Assembly: GCA_964035545.1 (NCBI GenBank)
Contig: OZ037772.1
Location: 2,790,001-2,854,000, forward strand
DNA: 64,000 bases
Direction: 5' to 3'
DNA from: Bugula neritina
Taxonomy: Eukaryota > Animalia > Bryozoa
A program made the position numbers and the translations under genes. Under the pieces are notes generated by a model. The model searched no databases. It was not told the DNA's origin and saw only the letters and a program-made list of their open reading frames with translations. This document shows, one piece after another, positions 1-63,795 of this stretch (its first letter is position 1; every line of letters starts with the position of its first letter).

Positions 1-2481
1 GAGCTACAAACCTGAGGCTAGAAATATATGGATATTTGAAGAGCTGCACACAGATAGTGGATAATTATAGAATAGAGCTGGCCTTGAGTAAGACAATGGG
101 CAGACAGTCTCTGCTGGACACAGTACAACATGCAGTTGATAAGTTCAATGATGCAGGGATTGTGAGAGACTACAAAGAGATGAGTGAGAAGGTGGAAAAG
201 GCTACAGATATTGGTGTAATAGAGAAGTGTGTACTTCCAGACAGCATCTTGGTACCAACATGTAGGTGGAGTCTATAAATAGTAACACTAACTATAAATA
301 ACTTTCTGCTTGTAATCATGTGAGTTGCCTTCACTGAATATTTTAATAGTAGAATAAGTAGATAGAGTTTATTTATTAGAGAATTGAGTTTTGTTCTACT
401 TTAACATTATGAAACATTTCTGCAGTGTTTCAGAGTTTATGATGTATAAGTGAGCTGCTAAACTGTGTCATGCTGACTACCTGCTGTCAGTATTAACAAG
501 ATATTCTCACTTAGACCTGTGCATCACGTAGCAACTTGTAGTAACTACAGACTGATTGTATTTAAAACATCTTTTTATTTCAAGTTTGAAAAGCTGTTTC
601 CCACCTCCTCAGGTGATGAGATTCTCAAGTTATAGAATTGTTATTTTGTTGTTGCAGACAGTGAAGACAGTCTGGGACTGAAGCTGCTGCAGCCACCAGC
701 TTCTCTACAGTCTGATGGACTTCCTGTACGTGACTGGTGTTTCACAGTAAACATCTCAGCTGATGGACATCTGATGTGTGTGATACGAGAAGGTGTAGAA
801 GTAATAAATAGAGAGACTCTGGATACTATCAGCTCAGTGAAACACACCAACACTACAAGGTGGGGGGAGATAATCCAACCTGAAGGGGTGATGGTTGCCA
901 GCTGGTATAATGAAGAGGAGAAAACAGCTGAAGTCGCACTTCTTGATCCGAACTCCTTTGAGAAGACTCGCTCTCTCTACAAGCAGTCAGTAGATGAACC
1001 CACTTACTATAGAATAGCTCAGCACGACTCACTGCTCTGTATTGTAGACTACAGTAAGAAACAGCTGGTAGTCTGTAATCTAGTTGACAATAAAATACAG
1101 AAGTTCCCACTTCCTGAGATGAAGAACCCTCGTCCTGTATACATCCTCCCAGACTCAACTCTCCTCATAGGAGACTGGGCAGATGGTAAAGTGAGAAGAT
1201 ATAAAGTGGAGAACACAACTCTCACTCTAATGTGGGATTTTCCTCACATCTCAGTACCAACTGGTATTTCCTTTGATCCAACATCTGAACTGATTCACAT
1301 CTGTACACTGGGAGGACCTCTCCTCATTCTCTCACTTGAAGGTAAATACTCTGTTTATTATAGTAAGTTTAGTTATTTTATATATAATTATGTTGTAGTA
1401 AATAATATATTTTAATAATTAACAGTAAACAACTTCCACTCATAAGATATATTATGATATTGTTAGTATTTATCAACTCACTGATGTTATTTTTAGCTAA
1501 AAGTTATGTAATAAAGACTGTAACATGCTGATAGTAGATGTTATATTCTTCATCACATGACTTGTAGCTAATAATAATATTAGTGAATAATACTGCCTCC
1601 CTACAATAAGTTTATTTCCAGCTGCAGTAACATGCAGGATGTAAGCACAGGTAAAAGTGTATAATATACTGTATAGGTTTAAGGTGTACTCTGTGTAGTG
1701 TGCAGTGAGCTCTTAGTAAACTCTCTATTCAGTCTTCCTTTCCAAGGGTTCACCTGGTAGAGTAGAGGATAGGGACTCCACACTGCTAAGTGAGTTGGTG
1801 CTGCAAGGGGTTCAAACCCACCTATCAGCATGTATAGTTAGTATACTATGCAAGTGTTTTACAGTAATTTTAGAGGTGCTCAGTCTAACAACTGTACAGA
1901 ATGCCAGCTACATATGAGTTATAAGTTGTAGTTTGACTTCAGTCTAGTGCTGCTATTGTTTTGGTTATCAGATAATTTAAATATAAATAATTTGATACTT
2001 TTTGACTGCCATTACTGAGACTATTGTAATTTGATGATGGCTGGTAGAGCAGTGTTTGCTGGTGGGACTCAGTTGGCTGTGGTTGGTTCTTGTCAAGTAT
2101 TTAATATGTGATAATGTTGGAGTAGCTGCAGTAGTAATAAAAGTACACACGTGGGTGTGTTCTTGTTAAGAGCCACAGGCTAAGTTTGTGAGTCAAGGTC
2201 AATATTGTTGTATAATGAGACACTATTATCTGCTCTATTTGAGTATTTACTTCATGCATGTAACCTGCTTAGTTGCATCTTTAAAGGCAGTCTGTCTGTT
2301 TCTCTCAATACACACTAACTGACACAATATGATGCTATTATTTACAGGTCAACTGGTGCTCACTGTTCCCAGAGAAAGTCTTGGTGTTAGTGACTGGGTG
2401 GGGGACATTGCGGTGTGTAACAGAGACACAGTGTTTCTAGCATGTAGAGATGGTTTGAGGAGATACACAATAAAATACTAA
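1..2481 (+). CDS. TRIM-family E3 ligase with NHL-like beta-propeller, paralog 1 (3' part only; exons <1-261, 658-1341, 2348-2481)
   Basis: GT-AG junctions join in phase 1 into an open frame (coiled coil, propeller, ...GLRRYTIKY*). Near-identical to exons 5-7 of the complete gene at 48070-63139. AATAAA at 2662-2667. Confidence 0.85.
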
Positions 2482-4900: not shown

Positions 4901-5865
4901 TTTATTGAGTAAATGTGACTACAGAGTCTTGACAACATAGCAGAGTAAATATGTTACATAATCATTACTAATCAACATCAAATACTGCATATAAACAGTG
5001 CAAGTCCTGTGGAATATATAATATTATACTGTGAGTAGAACACAATATATTATATTTGACATGTACTATTGATGACCTCACTGAGCTGATTATTAGTAAA
5101 CTGTAGCTGATAAGTTTAGTATTTTATTGTGTATCTCCTCAGACCACCTTCACATGCTAGAAACACTGTGTCTCTGTTATACACAGCAATGTCCCACACC
5201 AAGTCACTCACACCAAGACTTTCTCTGGGAATTGTTACCATCAGTTCACCTTTAAAAAATATAATGTCAGATTGAATCAGTTTGAGACAAACAGACAGAC
5301 TACAGTGATATCACAACAGCTGACACAACTACATGCAAGTTTTTACTTTCCAGTATAATATAGTAACTAAAATATATTCGATAATAATACAATAAATTTC
5401 AAATATATTTCTCACTCAGAAAGACTTCCTTTAAAGATGCAAGTAAACAGTCTATGTTGAAGATAATAAAGTTCTACCAGTCAGTATTGAATAATTCACT
5501 GAGCTGCTCTACTGTTTACTTCATAATAAATGACAACATGGAGAGACTCAACATAGAAATTTACCCCCTCAGCAAATATGATTATACAGGAGAGAAGATA
5601 TATAATATAAGTATTACATACATGAAGTAAATATTCTAACAGAAAATAATGTCTCATTATACAACTGTATTGACCTTGACTCACAAACTTAGCCTGTGGC
5701 TCTTATATAGAACACACCCACATGTCTACTTCTAATAATACTGCTACTGCAGCTACTCCAACATCATCACATATTAAATACTTGACAAGAACCAACCGCA
5801 GCAACCTGAGTCCCACCAGCAAACACTGCTCTACCAGCCATCATCAAATTACAATAGTCTCAGCA
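4901..5865 (-). pseudogene. Inverted third TRIM-paralog fragment: part of the last intron, last exon (5249-5116) and 3' UTR
   Basis: Minus strand reads aag|GT GAA CTG... = (G)ELMVTIPRESLGVSDLVWDIAVYNRDTVFLACEGGLRRYTIKY*. Region 5600-5865 matches intron sequence ~2010-2260. Minus-strand AATAAA at 4901-4906. No upstream TRIM exons. Confidence 0.85.
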
Positions 5866-5866
5866 A

Positions 5867-6165
5867 TTATTACATGATATAAGATATATTACATAATATA
5901 AGATATATTACATAATATAAGATATATTACATAATATAAGATATATTACATAATATAAGATATATTACATAATATAAGATATATTACATAATATAAGATA
6001 TATTACATGATTTAAGATATATTACATAATATAAGATATATTACATAATATAAGATATATTACATGATTTAAGATATATTACATAATATAAGATATATTA
6101 CATGATATAAGATATATTACATAATATAAGATATATTACATAATATAAGATATATTACATAATAT
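5867..6165. repeat. 19-bp minisatellite
   Basis: Unit ATATTACATAATATAAGAT, ~15 copies. Confidence 0.95.
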
Positions 6166-22860: not shown

Positions 22861-22951
22861 CTTAAAGAAACTAAAAGTAAAGTGTTTGCTGGAAAGAGAG
22901 ACAACAAACAATACAACTAAATCAAAAACAACAAAAAATCACAATATCAAG

Positions 22952-29312: not shown

Positions 29313-29607
29313 AATAGTATGGTGGGACACGCCGTCGTCTGTTCGTACGGACACGACGGAACACCCCACCCGAGTGGCAGGTACCACGCAGGACTAGTAG
29401 GCCCGCACAACGGCCGAGTACCTTCTCCCTGCCACTCGCCAACCGGTTCCACCGGTTACCTCGGGAAGAGCCCGCCACTGAAATGGAGCCAGAAGGCCCA
29501 GTGGAGAGCCCCAAACCCCGCCGGCACCAACCTCGCCGCCGGAAACCCCGTAAACCACGGGTGAAACCCCCGCCGTCCTACCAATCCAGGACAGCACATG
29601 CGGGGGG

Positions 29608-32600: not shown

Positions 32601-33882
32601 AGGCGCTCAATTCCAGTCTCAACTGATGAGCGACCTTTGCCACCTCTGGGGAGTAAATCAGAGCCGGACCACCCCCTACCACCCTCAAGGTAATGGAGTG
32701 GTGGAGCGCAACAACCGGATGCTAGGTGATGCGCTCCGGAGTCTCCTCCTTGGACGAGGACAAGAGGAATGGGATACGGTGTTGCCGCAAGTCATGCGGG
32801 CATACCGTAGCACCCCACACACCAGTACTGGTAAGACCCCAAACCTCTTGATGCTCAGGAGAGAGACTCGTGTCCCTGACCATATCACCTACCACGTTCC
32901 AGAGCAAGACAACTCGGTTCACGAGTATGCCAGTGAACTAGTGGAACGGATGAAGGCCGCACACGATATACTGCGCGAACAGCAGTGGAAGGTGCGGCAC
33001 GAAGATTCCGATGAACCACCTCTCTACCAAACGGGAGATAAGGTGTGGATGGTCAATTACCGTAGGCGTCGCGGACAGGCTGATAAACTGAAGCCTAAGT
33101 TCGTAGGACCCTACGTGATCGTCGAGGCTATGCCCAATCATACGTACAAGATTGAGCACTCAGGACAGGTGTCTATCCAGAATGAGTCTTGCTTGAAACC
33201 GTATTGGGCTAGCCCCGACGGAGTGGGAGAAGCCCCCCCGTTGTTGGAGCCCAGGAGGCAGACAACAACGCGCGGGCGACGGCGGCATGGACCTGAATAC
33301 GAAGTGGTCATACCGCGGGAAAAAAACTTGGTGAGAGAGGAGCGGCAGCTTTTGTCAACAGAAGCGTGTCCGCCACCGCCAAGTCTAATTCCATCACTTC
33401 CAGAAACCGAGCCGGTTCCGGAAGTGCAAACCCCCACGGAGGGAGGGGCTCCATCCGGAGAACAAGAAGAGGTGACCGCTAACGGTGAAGTAGAGACGCC
33501 ATTAGAGGCCCCTACTAACGAACCGGCGAGCGTGTCACCCCCCCTAGAGCGGGGACAGCGTACGAGGAAACCCCCACCATATTTAAAAGACTTCGTATGT
33601 GACTGCATTAGAAGCGGCGCGCATGAAAGTCTAGGGGAAAACCGTACGATAAAATGTTGGAGTTGTGAACCCCACGCAAATATCAACTTTTGCGAGGGCG
33701 GAATAGTGGGAGGAATTAATGCGCGTAAAGCAAATAGTTCTGACCTCGTGCCTCAGAAACGATGCTCAGCCTTTTCTTACGCTGACATCGCCAAAGGCAG
33801 ACGTATCTCACAACCAGCTCCAATCTTACCAAGAACGTTGAGTATGGACATTAATACCGAGTTCCCAGGTAAGCCCGTATAA
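29608..33882 (+). CDS. Pol of element 2 (PR, RT, RNase H, IN; no ATG, reached by frameshift)
   Basis: LLDSGC, YLDD, DTDAS..ELLA, HKQAH..CEIC, HSDQG..GNGVVER, KFVGPY, RTRKPPPYLKDF. Confidence 0.93.
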   Translation: MKVQPHGESYFLPGKVAGNAVTFLLDSGCTTNLLSRRVFEALPRRDRDRVRPYTGEHGTLADGSCIPFYGIIELPGRVRDQAVQETFVISQLEEDAILGMPFLKQHQCRIDFSKSVVLMGGRELACVDKFGRPLVSGVQVVRNCTVPGRSRATIHCRVNSNRIARLGVVEGAHGRIQLASSLNRLTERGEVLVQCVNPFTEPIELPAGSMLGRFHSVQEEDVGPSLGDATEAPPRYPIQGRGAVPTHLRELYETACGGCASNKERQAMAKLLHDYGDVFSSGDHDVGLTGVVRHEIPLNAGTVPVRQPTCRLGPEKEKEVSRQVRDLLDRGLIEPAHSAWSSPVVLVRKKDGSWRFCVDYRKLNNVTIQDAYPLPRIDESLDALAGSKYFSTLDLLSGYWQVPLSPDAQEKAAFITRDGLWKWKVLPFGLTSAPATFQRLMEQVLSGLHWKTLLVYLDDVIVISPDFETHVSRLQEVFERLRGAGLKLKPSKCALLQPEVKYLGHVVGRNGVATDPEKVRAVENWVTPQDLTGLRAFLGLVGYYRQYIPDFAGIAQPLNRLTAKGVTWQWTPVEQGAFDRLKGCLLTAPILAYPDPTLEYILDTDASDQNVGAVLSQVQEGREVVVAYYSKSLSPAEQNYCTTRKELLAVIKSVKHFKPYLYGRKFRLRTDHASLIWLCKRAEPSSQVARWLEILAEFSYRIEHRPGKRHSNADGLSRRPDGGCKQCLNIERRDGGPPRCELETLAHHGAPFDWDQGQLRQGVDESPEGVQNLRANPVLAGNVRELTKLQEELPGVVADIYRAKREGRRPSEERIRQGCAEFRLYCQRWDSLRIGQDGLLTISLAASGRHPERKRVVCPTAIRRELIWDTHKQAHAGVKIVISKLRLRWYWPQMERDVRLRVKQCEICQASKHGRPPGEAGRRRLYAGRPWQVVAVDLVGPMPLTPRGNNWILVLTDHFTRWADALAIPDASAPTVARALDQHVFCYFGLPEQIHSDQGAQFQSQLMSDLCHLWGVNQSRTTPYHPQGNGVVERNNRMLGDALRSLLLGRGQEEWDTVLPQVMRAYRSTPHTSTGKTPNLLMLRRETRVPDHITYHVPEQDNSVHEYASELVERMKAAHDILREQQWKVRHEDSDEPPLYQTGDKVWMVNYRRRRGQADKLKPKFVGPYVIVEAMPNHTYKIEHSGQVSIQNESCLKPYWASPDGVGEAPPLLEPRRQTTTRGRRRHGPEYEVVIPREKNLVREERQLLSTEACPPPPSLIPSLPETEPVPEVQTPTEGGAPSGEQEEVTANGEVETPLEAPTNEPASVSPPLERGQRTRKPPPYLKDFVCDCIRSGAHESLGENRTIKCWSCEPHANINFCEGGIVGGINARKANSSDLVPQKRCSAFSYADIAKGRRISQPAPILPRTLSMDINTEFPGKPV

Positions 33883-33899
33883 GTCTTGTATTCCTATTC

Positions 33900-34973
33900 A
33901 TGGAAACGAGCTCGATGCCAGTAAATTCTGAACTAATTCAGCAGATTGAATCAGAATTACTGGGAACCACGTTTCATGTGAATGACGATGAGGACACTGT
34001 AATGGCCGACGGTCTGTTAGACCTGGAGCTAGACACTGTTCTTGGTCAGTCCACACATGATTCATCGGTTCCTCGAGTGCATTCCAAAAGCTGTGACTCT
34101 CAGGCTAGTAACAGTCGACAGTCACTAGAATTATGTTGTAAAGATCCACCGCGATCTAACAATAATTCTACTCTTGTAGACACACTCGCGCCCGTCTCTC
34201 CGGGCATGCCTTCTCTAGAGATGGCGTGGGACCCAGAGCCGGCCCCAACAACTTCTACAACCAGGCAACTGCCACCCCAGTTGGAAGCAACCTCCAACTG
34301 GATAACCCCTGCCACAGAGAGAGAGATTAGGACTCATCAAGGAGGTGATGGTAACCGCGAATGCAACCTCTGCCAGCAGCGATTTACAACCCACCGCAGG
34401 CTGAAAGTACACTTGCCGCAGCATTACATCACCACGTTCTGCCCCTGCGGAGAATATAGTTACAATCGTGATTACCTACTGCGTCATCAACGCACTATGC
34501 AGTGTTATCAAGGACACGTCTATGAAGTAGACGAATCATCCTATCCCGCATTTCTCAACGCCATCAAACCCCTCATCACTGACCCAGCTCGGCTATCTCG
34601 CCTGGAGCAAGGCTTTCCTTCCCCGCGACCCATCATCTCTGGAGCCGCAGATAAACCTATACAGTCAACTAACTCTCCACCTCACAGCCCTCTACGCCAC
34701 CCGCATACCTTTCCCCGTGTCGTACTACAGAGGGTAGACACGAAGGCGTATACACTCCCTCCTCCCCTTCCATCCTCAGAACGGAAAAGACACAGACAGC
34801 AGACTTCCTCTCGTTCGTCCCCCCTGGCCCGCAACCTACGTGAAGTAGAAGCTAGGGCACACGACCTAGAGCAAGAAGTGTACAGACTGGCCCTGCGGGT
34901 GCAGGCTGCATCCAGTGAACTCAAATATCTACAGGAGTCTATTAAACGCATGAAGCGTGCGGCCCGCAGTTAA
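33900..34973 (+). CDS. Retrotransposon ORF3: acidic N-terminus, two C2H2-type zinc fingers, basic patch, C-terminal coiled coil
   Basis: 357-aa open frame inside the element: CNLCQQRFTTHRRLKVHLPQH, CPCGEYSYNRDYLLRHQRTMQC, ERKRHR, LREVEARAHDLEQEVYRLALRVQAASSELKYLQESI. Confidence 0.8.
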   Translation: METSSMPVNSELIQQIESELLGTTFHVNDDEDTVMADGLLDLELDTVLGQSTHDSSVPRVHSKSCDSQASNSRQSLELCCKDPPRSNNNSTLVDTLAPVSPGMPSLEMAWDPEPAPTTSTTRQLPPQLEATSNWITPATEREIRTHQGGDGNRECNLCQQRFTTHRRLKVHLPQHYITTFCPCGEYSYNRDYLLRHQRTMQCYQGHVYEVDESSYPAFLNAIKPLITDPARLSRLEQGFPSPRPIISGAADKPIQSTNSPPHSPLRHPHTFPRVVLQRVDTKAYTLPPPLPSSERKRHRQQTSSRSSPLARNLREVEARAHDLEQEVYRLALRVQAASSELKYLQESIKRMKRAARS

Positions 34974-36978: not shown

Positions 36979-38104
36979 CTGTTTAGCTGTGAAGGAACTG
37001 TTAGCTGCGGCACGAAACCACTTGAGGAAATTCTCCTGGCAGATGCACACTCAGGGCAGATGGAAAATCGTCTCGAATCAAACAAGTCGTTGCGAAACGA
37101 CTTGAATTTTTCAAACAAGTGTGGTAACCAAACCTTGCACCTACTCGATGAAGTGTCCAATGGATCCATGTGGGCCTTCAAGGTGAGTTGGCTAATTTAT
37201 TTGATAATTATGTTTATTCATTTGATATCTAGTGAAGCTATTTGCAGTATGATTTGGTCGCCATGTTGCAACTTAGAGTAACTATAACTTTGAGATTGTA
37301 AGCTAAAATTTACACAATATGTTCATTAAAACTGTTCTCTGCTTGTCACCAATTGCAATATTAACTTTCTCTATAACCCTGGATTATATTAGCTCAGTAT
37401 ATTTTTTTAGGCTCAGTTCCTTAGAATATAGTGTTTTATGGTTAATTCAACTTAGCATGTTATGCACCGTCTGCTAATTTTTCGATATATGAGACATTTT
37501 TAGAGGTGTGAGCTATGATCAAAAAGTCAATCTTTTTTTTACTTTGCTCTCTGCCATTCTTTCTCCATATTCTACACTATTTTACCTTATTCTTGCACAC
37601 CATTTTTTACATTACATTACATTTTTATTTTTTACCTACTCTTACACCACATTCTACCTTATTTCACCTTATTCTTGCACCATATTCTACATTATTCTAC
37701 CTTATTCTTGCATCATTTTCTACATTATTCTACCTTATTCTTGCATCATATTCTACATGATTTCACCTTATTCTTGCACTATATTTTATATTATTTTACC
37801 TCATTCTTACACCATATTCTACCTTATTCTTACACCATATTCTACCTTATTCTTGCACCATATTCTACATTATTCTTACACCATATTCTACCTTATTTTT
37901 ACACCATATTCTATTCAAGTGTTGGATGCTTGGGAAAATCCACCGACCGGATTTTTCACTGGAATACTCAACTGGGCTGGTGACTACCAGGAGTGTGTTG
38001 CCATCAGATCTACCTACGGAGAGAATGATGACCCGGGTATGTTGCTCTATCAGGGGAGGTACTGCTCCAAGATACACCCTAGCATGGCGGCCAATGACGG
38101 ATAG
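36979..38104 (+). pseudogene. NRF-6-like (nose resistant to fluoxetine 6) N-terminal domain fragment; exons ~36979-37182 and 37920-38104
   Basis: SNKCGNQT...SMWAFK | VLDAWENPPTGFFTGILNWAGDYQEC...YQGRYC fits the NRF domain pattern. Splice phases mismatch and no acyltransferase exons follow. Confidence 0.75.
37565..37915. repeat. ~23-bp degenerate minisatellite in the NRF intron
   Basis: Unit ACCATATTCTACCTTATTCTTGC. Confidence 0.9.
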
Positions 38105-48069: not shown

Positions 48070-51000
48070 ATGGCAGAATCCAGAGTTGTGAAAAAGAGAC
48101 TAAACAATTCGTATCGCTGTGGGTACTGCTCGCAGTACTTCAACAAACTTGAAGATCCCAGAACTCTGCCCTGTCTGCATGTGTACTGCATGAGATGTTT
48201 GAAGACTGACATCGGTGGTAGGAAGGATCATATTAGATGTGCTTATTGTAGGTGAGTTACAGTACATAACACAATATATCATGTCATAGGCTTGCATATG
48301 ATTATCTCACTATCATCTAGGAGTTGTCTGATCTATGTCTATGAAAAGCAAACAATACTTTATATTCTATGTGAACTCTGGTTACTAACTTGTGGAGTGT
48401 GTGGATATCTTCTCATTAGGTAGAGAAAGTAACTGTTATGTAGATTGCATCATCAGCTGTCCTCTCTTGTTGAATTGTGGTGCTGTTGGATGTCATGGGA
48501 TTGGGGTTGTCTCCTCATTATATTATTTTGTTCTCATACAGTACAAGACTTGTTAGAGCAGTGATTCCCAACCTTTTTCATACCATTCCCACTTTCATAA
48601 ATGTTTACTATTAAGTCCCCTCCCTTTTGTCAACCGGAATTTTTTATGAGTGACATAATGATAATATAGATTACAATGCAATATTTTTTCTCTTACATTT
48701 GAATATAATATAATTATTTCTAATAATTATATGTGACCCATCACGAATAACCGGGAACTTGGCGGCACTCATGAAGTGTAGTAAATGAAGGTTAAATTTT
48801 GAAAAATCAAAAATTGAAATTTTTTGCCAGTTTTTAGATTTTAAACTTTTCTGATACAGAAAAACTCAAGGAATTCAAATATCATATTTTCGCAAGCGTT
48901 TGCTAATTCCTTCAACCTCAAAATTGCCTTTAAAGTTGGTAACTATGCATTAAATATTTCTTCAAAATGGCGGATCGTAGCCAAGTTGACTCGGAGTTAT
49001 CATTACTATTACGAAAATTAAATTAGAATATTTCATAGCGCAAAATTCTACAAATAAATCTTTGTTTAATAAAGGTGGTTTACGCATTCTCCTCGCATGA
49101 TAGGAAGCCTACTTCTGAAACTAAGTTTAGTATTAGCTATTTTTGGCGCTGGCTGCAAAGATTAAGTTAGCTTTTAACGCAACTAGTTCCTGAGCTGTAT
49201 TTTAATATTGATCTTTATCTTTGGACTTAATGATTAAATCACTACAAAGCAGGTAATTATACTGAAAATAGCTCATTTATGCTACTAAATAATTATATAA
49301 TTTACTAGTAGTTATTAACTTATACTTATAGTTAAAGTTCTACTTCTACTTTTAATGTTGTAGTTGTTGAATTTAATACTAATCATTTAATGATTATGAT
49401 TAAAATATCAATTCGAATTATTTACTTATTAAGTTATTTGTATTAATAAATAATAATAGTATTACATTTTCATTTTGATTTACTCATTTACTTTAGCCTA
49501 TGTAGGTCAAATGCTTCCTTGACTTTCACCTTTATCTTTAACAGCTGATGCTAAAAAGATGATATTTTTAACTAGAAATTTTTAGTATTGAGTGTTTTAT
49601 TTTTATTCAAAATTAAATGCTCATACTCACATTGATAATACTATTAAATAGGGTTCAGTATTACACTAATACTATTAGTAATTCTTTTAGTTAGTTCTTG
49701 TGATAATCTTATTGAATATTATATTATCATTAACTTGAAGTTCATACTAAATCATAGTATTACTATTAGTATTAGTATTAAATGTTCATTTTCATATTAA
49801 TTATTTATAGAAATTTTAAGTCTGGGCATGTTAAGTGGTCTACAGTCAGTGCGAGTCCCACTTTTGAAGCGCAATTATTTTTTATATTGAATATGAATAT
49901 TTAACATCATCTATACTCATACTGAAATATCGAATGTGATTCAATTTGAATAAGTTCAAGTATAATAATAATATTCATAATAACAGTGATTAAGATCTTT
50001 AAGAGTGAAACAATAAGAATTATAATGATGTCAAAATCAATTCACTTGTTGTCAGCCTAACACTTACAGCTACCCTTAGTTTAAATCTTATAGTTATCTA
50101 TGACTATTAGTATACATCACTTTCATCATGCAAGACTTTCCAGTTTCAAAATAGAATTGGAGTACTACAACTACTTATGCTGATTTATTTGTTATATTTT
50201 TTTATTTTTAAGTAAATAATTGAATTTAAATTGGTTATGCAGTAGCTATATTTAGTAGGTTTTGTTGCTACTTGGCTAGCTCTGTCTACTCACTTTGAAT
50301 TGAATGTTAAATAGTATATTGATTTATTAGTTATTTCATTTTTCAAATCCAAGCTCATTGCTTCAGTACTGCCCATTCAAACATGCTAAATATTTAAATG
50401 ACTTAAATTTTGATGGTAATAGGAAAAAAGATAATTATTATTACTACATCATGATTATTATTCATGAATATAACATTATTTACATTTTAGGAGAGTGGAG
50501 ATGTGAGGGCAACGTGATGAAACTTGTTGAGGTTTTGCTTGATATTTCACCTATACAGCTCAATAGCATGCTGCATATAACCTATCATTCTTACACTTGT
50601 GATCCTGACACCCTGCATTTGGAGAGCTACCGCTTGCAAGCTTATAGCTTCTGCTAATTTTGTTCGTAAAAAGGTGTCTAGTATTTCATTATGCTCAGAA
50701 AGTTTATAAATAACTATTTTGCAAATGTGCCTTCAAACTCGCTATAGACTTAAATGTTGATAAATTTCTCAAAAACTATCAGCTGCTGTAATATAGTAGT
50801 TGAATGGTGTTTCAACAATTATATTTTATAGCCAGATTTAATTTCTAATGCACTATTGTTCTCTTTTATAATCTAAAGAAAAGTTTGATTTTATAATTAC
50901 AGGTCTAAGTGGCAAGATGAGCAGGGTAGATGTCTAGTAGCAGCATCTATCAACTTTGACTACTGGAATATTGCTCTTCTTTTTATGTGCCTATACTCTG

Positions 51001-54000
51001 TAAACTCAGGCTATGAAGAACAAGGACATAGATTCAGAGACGATAAGAATCACCTAAGCAGTCTTTCTGCTATATGAATTAATTTAAGTTTCATTTATGC
51101 TAAATTTCTACACTTTTATTTGTTTATAACAATTAATTTAATATTTTGAATGCAAATATCAATGGATAAATAAAATTTAAAAGAAACTTATACCTTATTT
51201 TCTTGTTTCAATATCTCAACTGATCCCCTTGCTATATGTAACTTTTGATCACTCTACATTGTCAATGTATGACTGAATAAGTTTTGCATAATATCATAAC
51301 AGTTGAATTATTTTCTCATATGATTTGTACTCATGGGAACAATTGATACTATCGAATGGTATGGCTCAATAGCTACGGCTGGACATGTTACATGAGATAT
51401 TATTGACGAGGAAAATAGCCAACGTAAAACAGGAAATGGCTGCCATTTTGTTTCATATGACACCTGGTTAACTTAGTTGGTTCGAATGAATGTCAGTGCA
51501 AAAAGTGCTTAAAGGTCCTTATATGTGCTGAAAGTAGCAAAATTTTCAACTGTTATCACAATTCATTAGCTATTCGGGGAAAATAAAGTTACAACAGGTT
51601 TGGCGGCCATCTTTGACTTATTTTTGTTGTTTAAGAAACGTAAAAACTGGTTGAGCTGAAAGCCCATACTTAAACGAATGTTTTGATGCCAAATTTGTCC
51701 AGTTTGCTAAAATAAAAAGGCCCGTTGCTAAGGCTTGACAAATGTAAACAAATAATCCATAATTTTTTCCTGACATGCTTACTTTAAAAGCAAATTTCTC
51801 AAATACGCGAATTGACTGTTCTAAGAACGCCAAGGCTTTTGAATATCAATATCTCGAGTTCTATTTGTACTAGAGACTTCAAATAAATTGCAAGATGATT
51901 GCAAAGATCTGCTCTATAACTTTATACTAATAACTCAATTTTGAAAAATTGACAAACGTTCCCTGTTTTGTGATGGGAGGTCACATATACTATACAGCTC
52001 TATACAATGGACTGTTTATGTCAGATTAACTATGTGTACTTCAAGTATAATAATGGGTACGCTATACCAACAATTTTATGAGTTACCCGGGAATTTTGCT
52101 AGTCCTAAGAACATCACTGGTTATCACAAGTTTAACATTATGTTGGCACTTCTGAATGGTTTTGATTGAGTTTTTAATTGCAGCTGTAGGCCAGGCACCA
52201 AGTTTTTTATTTATCAATTCATTAGAAACCAGGTTTTCTTAGTTATATGCTGAAGATTATCATATTAGAAAACTAAGAAAATAAAAGATAAGTGTAAAGG
52301 TTACAGGCAATATATAATTATAGTAAGTTTAAATCAATTCTGTTAGCAAAATTGTGTTAATATATTATACTGAATGGATCATCAGAACAATATTTGCTGA
52401 TGCTTTAAGCTAAGTGTTACTGATTAGGCTGTTTTTCTATATTTTTAAATTATTATTCATTTTTATAGAGCACAAAATGTTTATTTATAAACTACAGTTG
52501 CTAGCATACTTTTGCATATAGTGACCTCTAAGACATTGTGAGTAAATCAAATAAGGGTCATTTTACTTAATTTAGTACACACTGGATATCTTCAGTTTTG
52601 GCTATTTTTCACAATTTAGCTGGTAATGAACATGGTCTTTTGGCCAAAACTAGTAAAACACCAATAAATACACTTAAATAATCAAAGTTCTTTTCAACTT
52701 TGCTTTATTTCCTATGTTTTTCCCTAATTATTCAGCTATAGGTTTGGTTACAGACTGTTATACGGTTTTTTCGTAACGGTCCGCACATATGGAATATTAA
52801 GTGCATATGACAATGACCTGTGCTTTAATGTTGGGGAATCCCCTTCCAGCCTTTTCTGTTATGCTTAGTTAAAACCAGCACATAAAAATAGCATGTATAT
52901 ATAGTAAATTTCAATTGATTTTGAGCAAACTTTAATGTTAGGTCATAAGTTGCTGGTGTGTACTAAATAAAGTAAACTGACTCATAACTAGAAGATGTTG
53001 ATGATTGTTTATTTGTATAATATTATGCATGTGTAAAACACAGAGCAGTTCAATTAATGATATTATTATGGCTGCAGCTGATGACAGTGTACCAGCTTGA
53101 TTTCAAACCTCCCACCCCAACCCTTAAACCCCAACCCCAATATTGAAATTAAAACACATTCATGTAGAAGTAAACTGAGATGGCAGAATTGGTTAAATAG
53201 ATAAGCTAAGATGAATGCTTATAGATATACACAGAGAGAAATATTAGTGCAGCGCTTGCACTAAAGTTGTTCAAAGAGCCTTTTATTGTCAGTATAGCCT
53301 GCACCACACCTCTAATAGTTGTTAGACCTGCACTTATTTTGATGAAATTGAAAATTAATCCGATTAGTGTAAGCTGAAAAATATTTTGTAGTAGCTCTGA
53401 AACTACTTAGTAGTTAAGTCAACGCTACTTTTCACAAGTATTACGTAATCATCATCCCTAGGTCTGAATGAAGCTAAACAGTAGTTGATAGGAGCAGAAA
53501 GTGAGATCAATACTACAACTACATATGTTCAAGCAAAATTGTTTTTACATAAGAGTTATGGAACAATTGGCAGTTGTTCATCTAACAACATTATTCGTTC
53601 ACATGTGCACTAATGATGATCACAAACCTTTATAGGAAGCTAGGATAGAGTAGAACCTTACATTTGGGTCATTTCAATTGGTGCTTCCCAGTTAGATGCT
53701 ATTTATACATTTACGTGCAATTTATTTGAATACTATTGAAATATATGTGTATTTAAATAAATTTGAGTCAAGTGCTTTTTATAACTGGCACACAAATAAA
53801 TTTCTTTGCTCTGCATAAACCTATTAATTTTACAATTTCTATATTTTTTGTTTTTTGAAAAAATGTTATTATTAATGCATTTAATGCTTTTTTCAACACA
53901 AATATGGGAAAATTTAAATATTATTGCAAATATATCCTATTAATGGTTATTTTATGTTTAGCAATTGATATGAAAGTTATATAAGGGTATATAGGTATAT

Positions 54001-57000
54001 AATACTTAGTACCAAAACAAAAAATACAACCTAACTGGGGAGCATATAAGTGGAATGAAACTCCTTCAGCCTACTAGCTGTTTATGATTTCGAACTTTTT
54101 TTGAACCCAAGACATTTTCAATTAGCTTGTTACCAGACTACTATTAAACATTGCCCCACTCCACAAGACTTAAGTTGAATTTATCAACAAAAAATTTCAA
54201 CTGCACATATCTCTTGCATGGGTAGTTTAGGCTTCACTAGTCAATTTCATTCATGGAAAGGAAAGCCAACTAATTTAAAATGTGTGTAAAAGAGAGATCA
54301 GGGAGATGCACCATTAAACTCCAATGTACTCAGTTATCAGCAAATGTGTTTCAAACAAGAAGTTTAAAATTAACAATGAAACAAGCTACTGAATAGTCAA
54401 TTGTGGATCAGGTGAACCACTTCAAAAGCCTTGTGTAAACTTGTGTAAACTACCTGGTGGAACAAAAGAAGATGTTGCATAACAGAGCTATAGTAAGGAA
54501 ATATTTAAATTGTAATTCAAAGGCAAGAAACTGGCTTACCAAGCATCGGAAGAGCAAAACAAAGGTTATTACATAACAGCACATAGTTTTCATTCATGGC
54601 TATTGACAGAAGAAATATTCTGCTGGCATAGTGAACACCAGAGGCTCAGACTAAGAGGTTGTGCTTTGAGATTCAGTGAATTTGTGTTTCCAAACAACCT
54701 CACAACATGGAAAACGTTGAATCATTTCATCACATGGGTAAAGATTGCAGCTACCTCTCAGAGATAGAAGATGATCACTTTCTTTCAGAGTTAGGAACTG
54801 AAGTTGTCATTGCAGCAAAAGGTAAGTTCAATCATTTGCTTAACGTTGTCATTTTATATCACAATGACAGTATGACTATTGCTGTAGACAGATAAATAAA
54901 TTTGTGCAACTATAACTTTTAAAAGACCACATTGACGGATATTTCCCAAACTAATCTATTCCTATATCAATTTGATACGAGTTTTCCTGTAACAATCTAT
55001 TTTCAAAAAATTTAGCGTTTTATTCCCACTTCACCTTCTAGCAATTTGTGCTAAATTCATTAATTTGAATCCCCCCCCCCCATTGTAGAAGTATTGTTAA
55101 TAATGCAGTTTAGCAGCCTACAAGTGGTTATTAGCCTTAAACAGCTGCCAAGCTAGCTTCTTGTTTTATAGCTAAGTACCAAAATGCCAATATTAGCGGT
55201 GAGTTGGCAAAGTTGGCAAAATTTTTTATTAACTTCCGTGCTACCAGTTTATTCTTTTATTTATCTTTGCGCAGCACAATTAAATATAAAAACATGTTTA
55301 AGTAGCAATATTTTTCTTGGTAGTACTTTATTTGTTTTTCAATTTATAGACATACTGAAACTTATCAATATCTGTTATCTCGATATGAGGGGTTTATATA
55401 AAAGGCTGACTCTAGCTTAAATTGTGGTTCACTGACATTTTGAGATAATTTTAATGCAGAGAAGCTTCTATTAACTAAACTAATTATGCCCAACAGCTCT
55501 TGCATTTGTAATTAAGAAAGAAGTAAAATAAAATGATGGCCAAAATTGTTAGTAAATTTTGATAAGCTCAAACTAACCCAAACACTACGCAACATAATGA
55601 TCATAAGTTTGCCAAAGCCTGTATGGTTATTCAGAGTCAAACAATTGACATGGTGGCGCTGAAAATATGCTGAAAGATTCATAGCTAACATCATTGATAC
55701 TATTAGTTTTGGCCTTAGACTTCAGCTTCTTCAAAGTTGAACTTAATTTATTTACGCTGCTTGTGATTGTATATCTTAACCAAATGTATACTGCTCATAC
55801 TAATACAGTTTAAATATTACTCAACTTTTATCTTTTGTTGTAGATCCCATAACATTTTTTAAGAATGCTGAATAGGAGCACAAAAAAGAATTTGACCGCT
55901 ACAAAACTTTGAATCATGCTGAGACCTTCAGCCTGCAAGCAGGCGCACTTGCCACTACATTACAAGCGTCACTGGGTGCTCTCGACACTACACCTCACCC
56001 ACTTCTCAAGAACTCAGCTGCTCTTTTTATACTACTCCTTCAGGCTTCCCTGACCACTCAACTCCTCTTTGAGTACTACCACACTTTACTGACCACTGGA
56101 ATTAGTTATAAAACTTCTCCCTCCCCCCTCCCGTACTGGAGTTCCTATCACAGACCTCGGACTTGCACACACCACAACTGCTTGGTTATCGCTACACTAC
56201 AGAGCAAGAATGTAATGACACACACTATGGTCTTAGCAGGTTCTGCTAATATTGAGAAAAGTTAACTGAATTTACAGTCGTAGAAAAATTCTGCAAATGT
56301 TTATTTTCATGTTTTTTTTCTTATTTTAATTTTTAGAAGTTATTTTTTGTTGCATTTCTTATATTCAACTATCATATACAATAAAATCCACATTACTATA
56401 CTCTCATACTGGTTAGAAGTTATGACAAGTTAGTTCAGAGTGATCAGTAATAATTTTTGCAGAAGCTTATTTCCAACAAAAATTAGAGCAGCATGGAACA
56501 TTTATAAGTTCAGCTTTGAATATAACCTAGTTCAGCATTGAGCATATCTAAGATCATCATTGAACAGAAATAAGATCACCATTAAACATATATAATATCA
56601 CTATTGAGCATAAATAAGATCACTATTAAACATATATAATATCACTATTGAGCATAAATAAGATCACTATTAAACATATATAATATCACTATTGAGCATA
56701 AATAAGATCACCATTGAACATAACTTGGCTCATTGTGATAAATACAAAGAATCAACTTCACAACTCTTTATATCAACATTGATCTAACATACTATTCACT
56801 GTGAACAGTACCTGACACTAATTTCTATTCACTGCTGGTCAATTTAGGGATCCAAAAAACGAGCTGTTTTAGTTGTCAGCTAATGTTCACTCTAACACTA
56901 ATATTTCTCTCTGTGTACATGTGCATGTAACTTGCAAAAGCTCAAAAGCCTTCAACAAACTGCTTGAAATTTTTTAATCGAAATCCCAGCTCCCCTTAAA

Positions 57001-60000
57001 AAACCCAAATTCTCTCCTATAGGGGGATTCTCTCAGGTTGGGAATCACTGTGTTGAATTGACTTGTGTTTCTTATCTTCTTTCCTGTGATTATAAACATG
57101 TATGATGTTGTCATGACAACACAGTTGCAGTGGCACAAAGTACAGTTTACTAGTATGTAGTGATTGTGTAGTGAGAGTGGAGTGTCTGGTTATTGTCCAT
57201 GGTTATGTGTAATCTGTAAGGAGTAGAATTATATTATTTTAATATAATGTTGAGAGAGGTACTTTTATAATGGCAGTTTGCTCAATAGCTTTAGTTCTAA
57301 TGCGATAGACTCATAGCTCTAGAGTCTAGCAGCTGCTACTGTTACCACTAGCTGTTCAGAATTCGCCCAACATCCGGGCTGCCAAAGCATAATAGCCATT
57401 GGCAAGGCCAAGCAGTCACTGGGAAATTATTTGACTAAAGAGCAGGTCTTATGACAATTTGTAGCTAGTCAGTCCCTTAGACAGGAAACAGTGATTCTGT
57501 GACCTATTTAGTTAAATCCATTGCTGAACTTTTGATTGACTATTAGATAGCCACCACAATTGTATTTGGTACAATATAATATTATGGGGTGTCAATCAGT
57601 GTCTAATATAATCTGTGAATTGAGTGTCTCCTTTAGCTTTGATGAGCTGATTACTTCTTCTACCACCAGTCAGTTGTATCAAGTGTTACTTTGTATTGAG
57701 TGAATAGTGCTGAGGATTTGGGCCTATATTATGCCAACCCCCCCTCCGACTTAGACTGTGACCCAACCTGCTGCACATACATAGCAGTACTACACTGAAG
57801 ATAGTTAACATGTGTATGTGTCATCCTACTAGTAATGGATTACTAAGTACAAGTTATCCTATGACTCACTCTTCTTATGCTAGCTGCACGAGATAGACAA
57901 CTCACACGTGACACGCACTCACAGTGCACTAGCTCTTGACACATTGCCAAGGATGATGAAATGACAGTTTCGCGCCACTCCTACCAGTTAGAGTGGCAGG
58001 GTATAGTGTTAGGCATGTGACTCGAAGAAACTGATTAATGAGAAGCTAGTATCTCACTATAAATGGAAACTGTTTTGCAGTGACTCTCTCTTAGATTACT
58101 GTGGTACTATAATGTATGGTTCTGATATTATACTTTTGTTCTTTATACTTTCCAACTAAAAGTAAAGAGCTAGGTTTGAGCTCCATGATTGGCAAACCAT
58201 TAATACATGTTGACTGACCGAACACTCTCCCACCTCTCTCTCTCACAATAACAAGGAGGTTATGTTGTAGTATTGGCTCCACAGAATTCACACCTCAGTA
58301 ATTAGTTGCATTGCACAAAGCTGCAACAATAGTGAATAATTATTGACAATATGGCCTCCACTCAGTAGTTGACTAGTAATTTGTCTATCATTTTACAATA
58401 CAAGTTACAGTTGAGTCTATTTGTTGAGTAGCAGTTCTTTGTCATGAGTGACTATTTTCCAGCACATTAAGTACATAATATAGTCAAGTGTGTTTATGTG
58501 GTAGCCTGTGGTCTATATAATGAATGTGTGTTGATGAGTGATGAGTATTAATTTGACTATTTGCCAAGGACCTAGCTGTGTGTGTGGATGGAGTATTTCA
58601 TTACTTGAGATATACTAAACACAGCTAACACAGATAACATACTGATTGCTATATATTGTAGGAAAGATCACTATGACATAACAGATCCCACAACACTACC
58701 AGTAGCTCAGCATGGAGACCCCTTAGAATACAAGTCTCCACCCAAACCTGCACCCATTCCCTGTGATGTGTGTAAAGGTGGAACACAAGCTGCTGTGTTC
58801 TGCCTTGAGAGTCAAAAGAAATTATGTCAGCAGCATCAAGAAGTGAGTCTTTCTTATATAATTTCTCAAGATTAGTTACTAAACCAGTTCTGGATTGTGT
58901 GTAGAATATTATTGAAAAGAAATGTTGAGTCTGTGTGACTTTTTATACTAAACACACAGTTTCACAGTGCAGTGAGTCAGCTATGACAGACTTGTTGGTG
59001 AAAATACAACCAACTAAACTGTTGACCTTTATTATACAGAATCACAGAGAGCTGATGGGAGATAGACATCAGTTTATTGACATTGAGGTCTACAGAGCTT
59101 CTCCCCAAAGATATACTATAGCTGAATGTGAACATCATAAAGAGGAACAGCTGACAGAAGTGTGTTCCAAGTGTCACCAGATATTCTGTATGAGATGTGA
59201 TATGAAGACTGGCTGTAAGGATAAGACAGGTATTTACTTGCTGTTTCTATTTCTGTAGGAAGAAACTGAGAAATGTTACAAGAACCTGTTATTTATTATT
59301 TTATTATTAAAGTGAGTTATGTAACAGTAAAAGAGGAAGTAAGTTTGTCAGCATTAAGGTTTGTGTGAGACAGAAGTGGATAGTGCAGGAGTTTATAATC
59401 TCACTGTTATGTTGAATATTTAGTATATTTCATCCTTCAAGTGTCTGTTCCCTTGATAAGATGGTATAGGCATAGCTTTAACTCATGCAGTGGTGTCCCA
59501 ATTTTTTCATACCATTCCTTTTTTACAAATATTTTTTATTGAGTTTCCCCTTCTGAAAAATTGCAATTTATATTTGTAAAGAAAATCTTGGACAGATTTT
59601 TTTCCTAATAATTTATTGAGTGTAGCAAAAGGCCAGTGTGTTTGACATGGACCAGTGTCTGCCACAACTTGAGTTTTATTATAGTTATACATATACATGT
59701 AACCTGGAAAACAAGGCAAAAGCTCAAAGAGCTGGTAATTTGTGTGAAATTTATAGAAATGAAACCCCTAAAAACTCAAATTTCCTGCAAGGGGAATTCC
59801 CCCAAGGTTGGGAGCCACTGCTTTAACTTTTTCAATTATATTTTTTCAAATGCAGTGAATAATGAGATAACCATGTGACATCTTTCTAGAATGTTTCTTT
59901 GTATGAATCACTGCTGGAGAAGGTTGAGCTACAATCAACTCAGATAGCAATACTTGAGACAGAGTCCAACTGTTTAGTAATCACATAGTATGTGTATAGT

Positions 60001-63000
60001 GATACATCACCAACCTGTAGTTACAGGTAGTAGGTGTAGAATAAGTACAATGTCATATCTAAAAATGCTTTTATAAATAGTGTGATTTTATGTATACAGA
60101 GGAGACAGTAGCATCCCATGACTTGGCATCTTTGAGTGATTTGTCTTGTGAGTTACGAGAAAGTCTGACTGGTGGAATAGAGACTCTGTCTGAGAAAGTT
60201 GCAGAGTTGAATGACATCTCAAAGGATGCCTGGAAAGAACTGAGTAAAATAGAAGATGAAGTGAAGAAGATGGTTGCTAGAGTAAACGCTGTAGCCGACG
60301 CTCAGGTATGCTGACATGGCGATGTCATCTAATGTATTTCTGTTTGGCTGAAATTGGGTTTTGCATTTGGTCTTTGAGTTGTAAATAGAAATGAATTTCA
60401 TTTGCCACTAGAATTAACTGACCATTAGGGCATTATCATTCTGTGTACAAGTAGCAGTAGTCATTCATCACATGTTACTCAGTGCAGAGGAACCTGTCAA
60501 TACAGATGACTCACTCATCCTTCTGCAACTGTCAATCACTCACACAGGGAGGTTGGCTAGGCGAGTGATTGACAGGTGTCAGGAGGAGACTAGTCACGTG
60601 ATGAACTAGCTCTCTGCTGTGTATAGAGTGTCACGTGACTGAGTCATTGTCCACTCAGTGGGTGATCTGTTATTTTCATTTCAAGTGTAGAGGTTGTGAG
60701 GTGCAGATGTGGTTACACTGTGTTACTATTTATTAGATAGAAAAGATTAGAAAGAGAGCTACAAACCTGAGGCTAGAAATATATGGATATTTGAAGAGCT
60801 GCACACAGATAGTGGATAATTATAGAATAGAGCTGGCCTTGAGTAAGACAATGGGCAGACAGTCTCTGCTGGACACAGTACAACATGCAGTTGATAAGTT
60901 CAATGATGCAGGGATTGTGAGAGACTACAGAGAGACGAGTGAGAAGATAGAAAAGGCTACAGATATTGGTGTAATAGAGAAGTGTGTACTTCCAGACAGC
61001 ATCTTGGTACCAACATGTAGGTGGAGTCTATAAATAGTAACACTAACTATAAATAACTTTCTGCTTGTAATCAGTTGAATTGTTTTCACTGAATATTTAA
61101 TAGTAGAATGAGTAGATAGAGTTTATTTATCAGAGAATTGAGTTTTGTTCTACTCTCATATTATGAGACATTTCTGCAGTTTTTCAGAGTTTATGATGTA
61201 TAAGTGAGCTGCTAAACTGTGTCATGCTGACTACCTGCTGTCAGTATTAACAAGATATTCTCACTTAGACCTGTGCATCACGTAGCAAGTTATAGAATTG
61301 TTATTTTGTTGTTGCAGACAGTGAAGACAGTCTGGGACTGAAGCTGCTGCAACCACCAGCTTCTCTACAGTCTGATGGACTTCCTGTACGTGACTTGTGT
61401 TTCTCAGTAAACATCTTAGCTGATGGACATCTGATGTGTCGGACACCAGAAGGTGTAGAAGTAAGAAATAGAGACACTCTGGATACTATCAGCTCAGTGA
61501 AACACACCAACACTACACGGTGGAGGGAGATAATCCAACCTGAAGGGGTGATGGTTGGCAGCTGGTATAATGAAGAGGAGGACACAGTTGAAGTCTCACT
61601 TCTTGATCCGAACTCCTTTGAGAAGACTCGCTCTCTTTTCAAGCAGTCAGTAGATAAACCCACTTACTATAGTATAGCTCAACACCTCTTTCTAGTTTAT
61701 ATTGTAGACTGGAGAGAGAAACAGCTGGTAGTCTGTAACCTAGTTGACAATAAAATACAGAAGTTCCCACTTCCTGAGATAAAGTTCCCTCACTCTGTAT
61801 GCATCCTCCCAGACTCAACTCTCCTCATAGGAGACTTCACTGCAGATGGTGCTGTGAGAAGATATAAAGTGGAGAACACAACTCTCATTATGATGTGGGA
61901 GTTTCCTCACATCTCAGGACCATCTGCTATTTCCTTTGATCCAACATCTGAACTAATTCACATCTGTACAGGGAGAGGACCTCTCCTCATTCTCTCACTT
62001 GAAGGTAAATACTCTGTTTTTTTATAGTAAGTTTAGTTATTTTATATATAATTATGTTGTAGTAAATAATGTATTTTAATAATTGACAGTAAACAACTTC
62101 CACTCATAAGATATATTATGATATTGTTAGTATTTATCAAGTCACTGATGTTATTTTCAGCTAAAAGTCATGTAATAAAGAGTGTAACATGCTGATAGTA
62201 GATGTTATATTCTTCATCACATGACTTGTAGCTAATAATAATATTAGTGAATAATACTGCCTCCCTGCAATAAGTTTATTTCCAGCTGCAGTAACATGCA
62301 GGATGTAAGCACAGGTAAAAGTGTATATTATATTGTATAGGTTTAAGGTGTACTCTGTGTAGTGTGCAGTGAGCTCTTAGTAAACTCTCTATTCAGTCTT
62401 CCTTTCCAAGAGTTCACCTGGTAGTGTAGAGGATAGGGACTCCACACTGCTAAGTGAGTTGGTGCTGCAAGGGGTTCAAACCCACCTATCAGCATGTCTA
62501 GTTAGTATACTATGCAAGTGTTTTGCAGTAATTTTAGAGGTGCTCAGTCTAACAACTGTACAGACTGCCAGCTACGCATGAGTTATGAGTTGTAGTTTGA
62601 CTTCAGTCTAGTGCTGCTATTGTTTTGGTCATCAGACAATTTAAATATAAATAATTTGATACTTTTTGACTGCCATTACTGAGACTATGTAATTTGATGA
62701 TGGCTGGTAGAGAAGTGTTTGCTGGTGGGACTCAGGTGGCTGCGGTTGGTTCTTGTCAAGTATTTTATATGTGATAATGTTGGAGTAGCTGCAGTGGTAT
62801 TAGAAGTAGACATGTGGGTGTGTTCTTGCTCAGAGCCACAGGCTAAGTTTGTTGGCCAAGGTCAATATTGTTGTATAATGAGACACTATTTTCTATTTGA
62901 GTATTTACTTCATGCATGTAACCTGCTTAGTTCCATCTTTAAAGGCAGTCTGTCTGTTTCTCTCAATACACACCAACTGATACAATATAATGCTAATATT

Positions 63001-63139
63001 TACAGGTCAACTGGTGCTTACTGTTCCCAGAGAAAATCTTGGTGCAAGTGGCTGGGTGGTAGACATTGCTGTGTATAACAGAGACACAGTGTTTCTAGCA
63101 TGTGAAGATGGACTGAGGAGATACACAATAAAATACTAA
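48070..63139 (+). CDS. Complete TRIM E3 ligase, RING-Bbox1-Bbox2-coiled coil-NHL-like propeller, 619 aa (exons 48070-48251, 58662-58842, 59040-59229, 60100-60305, 60737-61016, 61318-62004, 63006-63139)
   Basis: RING CGYC..PRTLPCLHVYCMRC..CAYC; B-boxes CDVC..FCLES..LCQQH and CEHH..CSKC..FCMRC. All GT-AG phases agree, giving 1860 nt with no internal stop. Confidence 0.88.
48732..51985. mobile_element. Nested non-autonomous TIR element with TGT...ACA ends
   Basis: TGTGACCCATCACGAATAACCGGGAAC vs GTTCCCTGTTTTGTGATGGGAGGTCACA; TATA on both flanks. Confidence 0.6.
56550..56720. repeat. ~22-bp minisatellite (alternating variants)
   Basis: TAAGATCACTATTAAACATATA / TAATATCACTATTGAGCATAAA. Confidence 0.85.
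59488..59820. mobile_element. hAT-like MITE related to the 48559-57050 element
   Basis: CAGTGGTGTCCCAA...GGTTGGGAGCCACTG; CTTTAACT near both ends; shared subterminal GGGGAATTC. Confidence 0.55.
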
Positions 63140-63795
63140 ATTTATCAGCTACAGTTTACTAATAATCAGCTCAGTGAGGTCCTGAGAGATGAATTGGATA
63201 ATATTTGTCATCAACATAATTATTTCATCACAATTCATCAATACACACACTCTGTAATTATAGTTAGATATGAGATGTTTTACTGTATCAAATATGTGTT
63301 GCTATTTTACCATCTAATAAAGTTTATTTGTTAGTGAAAACATAGTCTGTTTTCATGCCTCATTAGCTTTAGTTCAAGTTGAGTTCGGTTAGTAACAATA
63401 ATCTTTACTGGAGCAGTAACTGTAAATGACTTGTTAGTGAGAGAATTTATACACTGAATTGACATGCAGGTGCAAGTAACTCCAACATGACTAAGTAAAT
63501 TTATTCCAACCACACATGATACCTAATATGCATTCCACTGCTGTGTATACAACAGTATTGAGTAGCCAATCAAATTGTTTCTTGTCATGCTATCAGGGAT
63601 CTGATAAATAATATATAAGGCAATCAACTAGATATAAACACTGTTTTACTCTACACATGAGCTGTCTGTGATGCAGCTGCTTTGTGAAATGTGTGTAATT
63701 TGATGAGTTTAGTTCAGTCGGTTGCAGTTTAATTATGACATATTCCCCATTCACCTGGGAGAAATCCCATGAGGTATAATAGAGGACAACTCCTA
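60756..63795 (+). repeat. Segmental duplication, copy B (pairs with 1-3119)
   Basis: Collinear with 1-3119; lacks ~95 bp present in the copy A intron (~532-627). Confidence 0.95.

Follow-up and report, generated by a model that had tools for sequence, protein, structure and literature searches.

The 64,000-nucleotide stretch of Bugula neritina DNA analysed in this study (assembly GCA_964035545.1, contig OZ037772.1, C8:2,790,001-2,854,000 in our genome set of 216 Mb and 321 contigs; hereafter the window) carries two copies of a gene predicted to encode a TRIM protein with a RING finger, B-boxes, a coiled coil and a C-terminal beta-propeller. The window opens inside copy A and closes just past copy B; both are on the plus strand, 60.7 kb apart. 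Self-comparison of the window aligned 626-3094 with 61286-63752 at 93.1% identity and 1-541 with 60756-61296 at 96.5% identity. The two copies belong to a large family in which the propeller is diversifying under positive selection, at sites that are predicted to cluster on one face of the fold. The parts of the copies are as follows.

48070..48251, plus strand: copy B exon 1, start codon and C3HC4 RING finger; 60 codons plus 2 bases, GT donor at 48252; located by tblastn with the L058 RING exon, 81% identity
58662..58842, plus strand: copy B exon 2, linker with the first B-box-like Cys/His cluster (CDVC...C...C..H); frame conserved in distant paralogs (tblastx, alignment); bounded by an AG acceptor and a GT donor
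59040..59229, plus strand: copy B exon 3, B-box 2 (CEHH...C..C....C..C); Pfam zf-B_box 23.0 bits, cut-off 24.1
60100..60305, plus strand: copy B exon 4, coiled-coil part 1; AG/GT kept in 49 of 49 copies; weak coiled-coil-type Pfam matches
60737..61016, plus strand: copy B exon 5, coiled-coil part 2; acceptor and donor set by alignment with distant paralogs; AG/GT in 49 of 51 copies
61318..62004, plus strand: copy B exon 6, propeller blades 1-5 with 22 positively selected codons; AG acceptor, GT donor at 62005, frame from 61320
63006..63139, plus strand: copy B exon 7, the last blade (6) and the TAA stop codon (63137-63139); hypervariable at ASGWVV and at the E in ACEDG; set by translation and variability over 49 copies
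1..261, plus strand: copy A, 3' part of coiled-coil exon 5; the gene start lies before the window, with the RING and B-box exons in L037
658..1341, plus strand: copy A, propeller exon, partner of copy B exon 6
2348..2481, plus strand: copy A, last exon, blade 6, VSDWVG
5074..5867, minus strand: inverted fragment of a third copy, part of intron 6 and an open last exon (VSDLVW, 5074-5301); blastn identity 84-89%

The seven exons of copy B have compatible phases on one strand, and the model predicts a protein of 619 residues. Its exon borders were placed by tblastx and by alignment against distant paralogs and a related metagenome contig (L058). The RING exon reads with C3HC4 spacing and scored 31.5 bits against Pfam zf-RING_UBOX (cut-off 25.2) and 23.1 bits against zf-C3HC4 (cut-off 21). 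Pfam was searched exon by exon, so that domains split by introns were scored in parts. This is why B-box 2 falls just below its cut-off. B-box 1 gave only a weak match, to ANCHR-like_BBOX (E = 0.066). A regular-expression search of the 8.7 kb preceding the B-box exon found no RING exon; the exon sits 10.4 kb upstream. Intron 1 of copy B (48252-58661) is 10.4 kb long, compared with about 2.2 kb in the close paralogs L036 and L037, and insertions at about 53233-56912 and 58012-58259 explain part of the excess. With the RING exon of copy B located at 48070-48251, both copies would be, as read from their exons, true RING/B-box/coiled-coil/propeller TRIMs. Between the coiled coil and the propeller, nothing resembling a filamin/Ig domain is evident. 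The N-terminus of copy B reads MAESRVVKKRL and leads directly into the RING finger, and no signal peptide, hydrophobic leader or membrane segment was recognized by eye in any exon translation. Since the RING is N-terminal and no signal peptide precedes it, the protein should be intracellular, that is, cytosolic or nuclear. No third propeller-exon match was found within the window, and the inverted fragment at 5074-5867, which lacks one, is probably a rearrangement remnant.

The propeller exons of copies A and B differ at 39 aligned residues and by one indel over 228 residues. By the Nei-Gojobori method these correspond to 47.5 nonsynonymous and 10.5 synonymous differences (dN 0.097, dS 0.070). 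The overlap of the coiled-coil exon (1-261 versus 60756-61016) contains exactly three amino-acid differences, K/R, M/T and V/I. At the nucleotide level, the two copies differ at 40 of 1000 positions in intron 5 (4.0%), at 58 of 684 in the propeller exon (8.5%) and at 13 of 134 in the last exon (9.7%). Sixteen of the 40 propeller differences sit on the 22 sites that are under selection across the family (Fisher p = 1.6e-9). These results agree with the original prediction, made by inspection of the window, which had reported about 39 residue differences with few synonymous ones (roughly right), three differences in the coiled coil, very similar introns and a clustering of changes at loop positions. 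All of the loop strings that it listed are found in the A/B alignment, and the last-exon strings VSDWVG, ASGWVV and VSDLVW are exact for copy A, copy B and the inverted fragment, respectively. Its proposal of diversifying selection is borne out by the site models of 51 family members described below, but not by the A/B pair taken alone (dN/dS 1.39, Fisher p = 0.33).

Propeller exon 6 has 130 matches in the genome, 96 of which are near full length with 52-86% identity. Ninety-three of the 96 are open and only 3 carry an in-frame stop. The region C8:0-4.7 Mb holds 63 of them, and smaller clusters are found on C1, C2, C3 and C4. In the copies that we retrieved, exon 6 is open in 51 of 51 and the AG/GT splice sites are kept in 49-51 of 51. 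The suggestion of an expanded TRIM family is supported, with 96 near-full-length exons together with a RING above its Pfam cut-off, a B-box just below, coiled-coil exons and a propeller. Elsewhere, close relatives (53-81% identity) were limited to single-exon open reading frames (ORFs) in JGI and Logan assemblies. One contig, L058, shares the gene structure, with 85-91% nucleotide identity. A literature search found no paper describing this bryozoan TRIM-propeller family.

The array at C8:0-4.7 Mb flips its orientation in blocks; large inversions inside it are suggested by minus-strand runs at about 0.12-0.21, 2.21-2.54 and 4.36-4.70 Mb. A second cluster of at least a dozen ORFs, at C8:6.71-7.21 Mb and C2:26.5 Mb, aligns with the propeller exon over its full length at 23-28% identity; it may be a distant sister array of propeller genes.

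Mean pairwise divergence was calculated region by region from 45 complete copies. It was 2.1% in coiled-coil exon 4 and 1.8% in exon 5, 5.4%, 4.3% and 4.3% in the introns, 7.3% in the propeller exon and 8.0% in the last exon. The values for the propeller and last exons exceed those of the introns; thus, the C-terminal exons outpace their own introns. The Nei-Gojobori ratio (omega) was 0.42 for exon 4, 0.51 for exon 5, 1.19 for the propeller exon and 0.78 for the last exon. Site models were fitted to 51 copies of the propeller exon with our own codon maximum-likelihood program (F3x4, IQ-TREE topology fixed, one scale factor). M0 gave an omega of 1.63, and the log-likelihoods were -7387.1 for M1a versus -6828.2 for M2a, and -7407.7 for M7 versus -6835.5 for M8 (2dlnL 1144), with M8a at -7376.3. 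A class of 10-11% of the codons had an omega of about 11, and 22 sites had a posterior above 0.95, our criterion for a selected site. Another 58% of the codons had an omega of 0.09, which shows constraint on the fold. The 22 sites have a nonsynonymous divergence of 0.41, roughly tenfold that of the introns (0.04-0.05). As a control, coiled-coil exons 4 and 5 were concatenated as a codon alignment; M0 omega was 0.57 and 2dlnL was 15, about 70 times weaker than in the propeller.

Other sources of this signal were considered. An artefact of using a single tree was rejected, as the signal persisted when four sub-windows of the propeller exon were each given their own tree (2dlnL 160-253 apiece). 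A mutational hotspot was also rejected: among pairs with the same amino acid, the codon differs in 4.9% at the selected sites versus 4.1% elsewhere, and synonymous codon change is therefore not raised at the 22 sites. Relaxed constraint was rejected on the basis of the open exons (93 of 96), the conserved splice sites (49-51 of 51) and the 58% of codons under strong constraint. Separately, the coiled-coil exons (60100-60305, 60737-61016 and their paralogs) contain a small class, 2% of codons, with an omega of about 6, which is either a few adaptive sites or a recombination artefact.

The selected residues of the propeller exon are, by group, 26, 28; 41, 43; 62, 67, 69; 82, 85, 88; 113, 114; 127, 131; 156, 158; 173, 175; 200, 202; and 218, 219. 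They form two groups per blade with a period of about 44 residues. AlphaFold2, given a 31-sequence alignment of the propeller exon, produced a model with 19 strands (pLDDT 86.9, pTM 0.82), blade 6 being outside it. On this model, 15 of the 22 sites are in the D-A loops (before strand 1) or the B-C loops (between strands 2 and 3) (p = 1e-6), and none of the 22 is in an A-B or C-D loop. The other seven are in strands A and B (1 and 2), mostly at the ends beside the D-A and B-C loops. In the last exon, the same loop pattern recurs for blade 6, with a further 3-4 fast codons. In an antiparallel sheet, successive loops alternate between the two faces, and the D-A and B-C loops form the "top" face, which binds the ligand in NHL and WD40 propellers. 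Because the selected loops alternate as well, all of them lie on one face of the modelled propeller. Among the 51 copies there are 50 distinct signatures at the 22 sites, and two copies differ on average at 15.7 of the 22. Trp is enriched 12.7-fold, Arg 4.0-fold and Tyr 3.1-fold at the selected sites. With about 22 selected and 3-4 fast codons, most of them in or beside loops of the same face, nearly every copy thus has a different predicted recognition surface, rich in Arg, Trp and Tyr.

The C-terminal region is modelled as a six-bladed NHL-like beta-propeller, which would place the family with the TRIM-NHL proteins (class VII). The best structural matches of the model were TRIM-NHL domains, among them RNA complexes of TRIM71, Brat (hunchback RNA) and Lin41; the YWTD propellers of LRP6 tie with them within 1 Z unit, and the matches found by Foldseek were generic propellers. 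A sequence search of the PDB returned Pizza6 alone (E = 0.034). A profile search over 1.84 billion representatives found only 52 proteins, 17 of them below 1e-10, and the remote matches (E from 1e-4 to 1e-10) carry NHL repeats or a RING and a B-box. Since NHL repeats escape Pfam, the profile matches are so few and the distant ones carry NHL or RING and B-box, the family is a very divergent, lineage-restricted TRIM-NHL-like branch. The term "NHL-type" used in the original prediction is supported by the fold and by the remote profile matches, but not by Pfam or by the tie with LRP6. Of the checks that it proposed, the M7/M8 comparison on 51 copies detected the strongly selected class and its 22 sites, and on the AlphaFold model the sites in loops fell, by strand order, only in alternate loops. 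Its view that the propeller is the diversifying part is upheld by the agreement of the site models, the exon-to-intron comparison and the loop periodicity.

Copies A and B would then both be intact genes of a lineage-specific TRIM E3 ubiquitin-ligase family with at least 93 members and the domain order RING, B-box 1, B-box 2, coiled coil and six-bladed NHL-like propeller. We consider it probable, at roughly 0.6, that this TRIM family with its hypervariable propeller face is an intracellular, germline-encoded repertoire of recognition modules coupled to ubiquitination. The face of each propeller would be matched to its own fast-changing target; proteins or RNA from viruses, retroelements or other parasites living inside cells are the most plausible candidates. 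Dimerisation, together with ubiquitination of the target or signalling, would fall to the constant RING/coiled-coil half, as in TRIM5alpha and the fish finTRIMs with their B30.2 domain. RNA rather than protein may be an attractive target given the NHL precedent.

Diversifying TRIM repertoires are known from vertebrates, with B30.2 domains, and TRIM-NHL proteins are regarded as conserved developmental RNA regulators. In TRIM5, the loops of the recognition domain (PRYSPRY) are under diversifying selection; in TRIM-NHL proteins, the RNA ligand sits on the D-A/B-C loop face. The bryozoan family resembles TRIM5alpha and fish finTRIM/btr (B30.2/PRY-SPRY TRIMs) in having a conserved scaffold, here a predicted RING/B-box/coiled-coil one, and positively selected loops in the C-terminal, putative recognition domain. 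It differs from them in that the recognition domain is a six-bladed NHL-like propeller, not B30.2, with about 12 variable loops (two per blade) compared with 3-4 loops in B30.2, and in that the host is a lophotrochozoan (bryozoan). With the TRIM-NHL proteins (TRIM2, TRIM3, TRIM32/Thin, TRIM71/LIN-41, Brat and Mei-P26) it shares the predicted domain order. However, it has more than 90 copies and an omega of about 11 on the face that corresponds to their ligand face, and its NHL repeats are undetectable by Pfam and a filamin/Ig domain is not evident. The finTRIMs, too, form large, clustered, lineage-specific expansions (PMC3137616). Fast-evolving TRIMs constitute "group 2", whereas canonical TRIM-NHL genes are single-copy, slowly evolving developmental regulators of "group 1" (PMC2533329).

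The family is also similar to the F-box and MATH-BTB families, which are large, clustered, lineage-specific E3 families in which the substrate-binding domain alone diversifies. Thomas reportedly found in 2006 that these adaptor families are under positive selection in nematodes and plants, and a role in marking pathogen proteins for degradation has been proposed for them. The folds are different, those proteins are cullin adaptors and not RING TRIMs, and the periodic one-face pattern on a propeller is found only in the bryozoan family.

Several points weigh against the proposed repertoire. The selection analysis covered 51 of about 96 copies of propeller exon 6, and the site models were written by ourselves, with fixed topologies and naive empirical-Bayes posteriors. 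Thirty percent of the informative site pairs in the propeller exon fail the four-gamete test. Recombination, gene conversion or recurrent mutation is therefore common there and can inflate likelihood-ratio tests, so little weight should be put on the exact size of the likelihood ratios. A PHI-type test gave no significant sign of distance-dependent recombination in this exon (p = 0.096). The placement on one face is topological, from strand order in a model without blade 6. The propeller exon of either copy matches no Pfam family at E up to 1, including the NHL repeat (PF01436). A word search with coiled-coil exon 5 (60737-61015) found single-exon ORFs only, all of them unspliced, and the spliced exon 5-exon 6 junction is absent from the JGI metagenome contigs and from the genome. 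Its absence from the genome also means that there are no retrocopies.

What the variable face recognises may be seen differently. The targets could be endogenous, the proteins acting as RNA-binding TRIM-NHL regulators or taking part in a genetic conflict within the animal, for instance over the control of germline, gametes or transposons. The closest folds are the RNA-binding NHL domains of TRIM71, Brat and Lin41, Brat and LIN-41 bind mRNA on the same face, the enrichment of Arg, Trp and Tyr would suit contacts with nucleic acid, and intact Ty3/gypsy elements lie between copies A and B (see below). However, regulators of fixed endogenous RNAs are normally conserved, and an omega of about 11 with 50 faces in 51 copies needs a moving target, so we regard endogenous targets as unlikely. 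Slightly more doubtful still is a specific form of defence, in which about 100 inherited NHL propellers would act as a library whose RNA-binding face, the one with which TRIM71 and Brat recognise RNA sequence-specifically, has diversified against viruses and against the envelope-bearing gypsy retroelements with which the array is filled, their RNAs or capsids being the targets. If true, this would be an innate defence that is sequence-specific and coupled to ubiquitin, on a fold for which diversification was not known before.

The original prediction also allowed for allorecognition receptors, and the copies might encode labels or receptors of self and non-self for colony fusion, because the animal is a colonial bryozoan and the family is large, clustered and diversifying. 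A place on the cell surface is unlikely, however, as the protein starts with MAESRVVKKRL and the RING and shows no signal peptide or membrane segment by eye. In this respect it differs from Hydractinia Alr and Botryllus fuhc, which are secreted or membrane-anchored. In addition, the known determinants of allorecognition are few, extremely polymorphic loci, compared with about 100 paralogs here. Allorecognition is thus improbable, and the predicted intracellular location favours a TRIM5/finTRIM-like role in restriction or surveillance over recognition at the surface. Least credible is an origin without adaptive diversification, by relaxed constraint on decaying duplicates, gene conversion of the 5' half only or local hypermutation: the low A/B omega, the star-like tree with low support, the incompatible site pairs and a propeller-exon dS of 0.067, somewhat above intron divergence, point that way, but this idea is largely refuted by the open exons and kept splice sites, the constrained majority of codons, the unraised synonymous change at selected codons, the persistence of the signal with separate trees and a divergence at the 22 sites that is beyond neutral reach.

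If the proposed intracellular repertoire is correct, a set of more than 90 germline recognition genes would have been invented independently, on a different fold and in a lophotrochozoan. Its paratope would be geometrically simple, consisting of two loops in each of six blades. To our knowledge, bryozoan innate immunity is almost unknown, and the family may offer an entry point, since grafting, modelling and ligand screening are all feasible for its approximately 25 variable positions.

Between the copies, a 46-kb spacer contains two Ty3/gypsy-type retroelements on the plus strand, with long open pol ORFs (reverse transcriptase, RNase H and integrase).

22886-26935, plus strand: Ty3/gypsy element 1
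28446-34973, plus strand: Ty3/gypsy element 2, in a GC-rich island (53-57% against a background of 30-40%)

Element 2 has an extra ORF of 357 amino acids after pol, with no match in Pfam. Further along the spacer, a plus-strand ORF of 198 amino acids (37508-38104) matches the N-terminal domain of NRF (nose resistant to fluoxetine) with E = 6e-9; it probably represents an exon from some unrelated gene located there.

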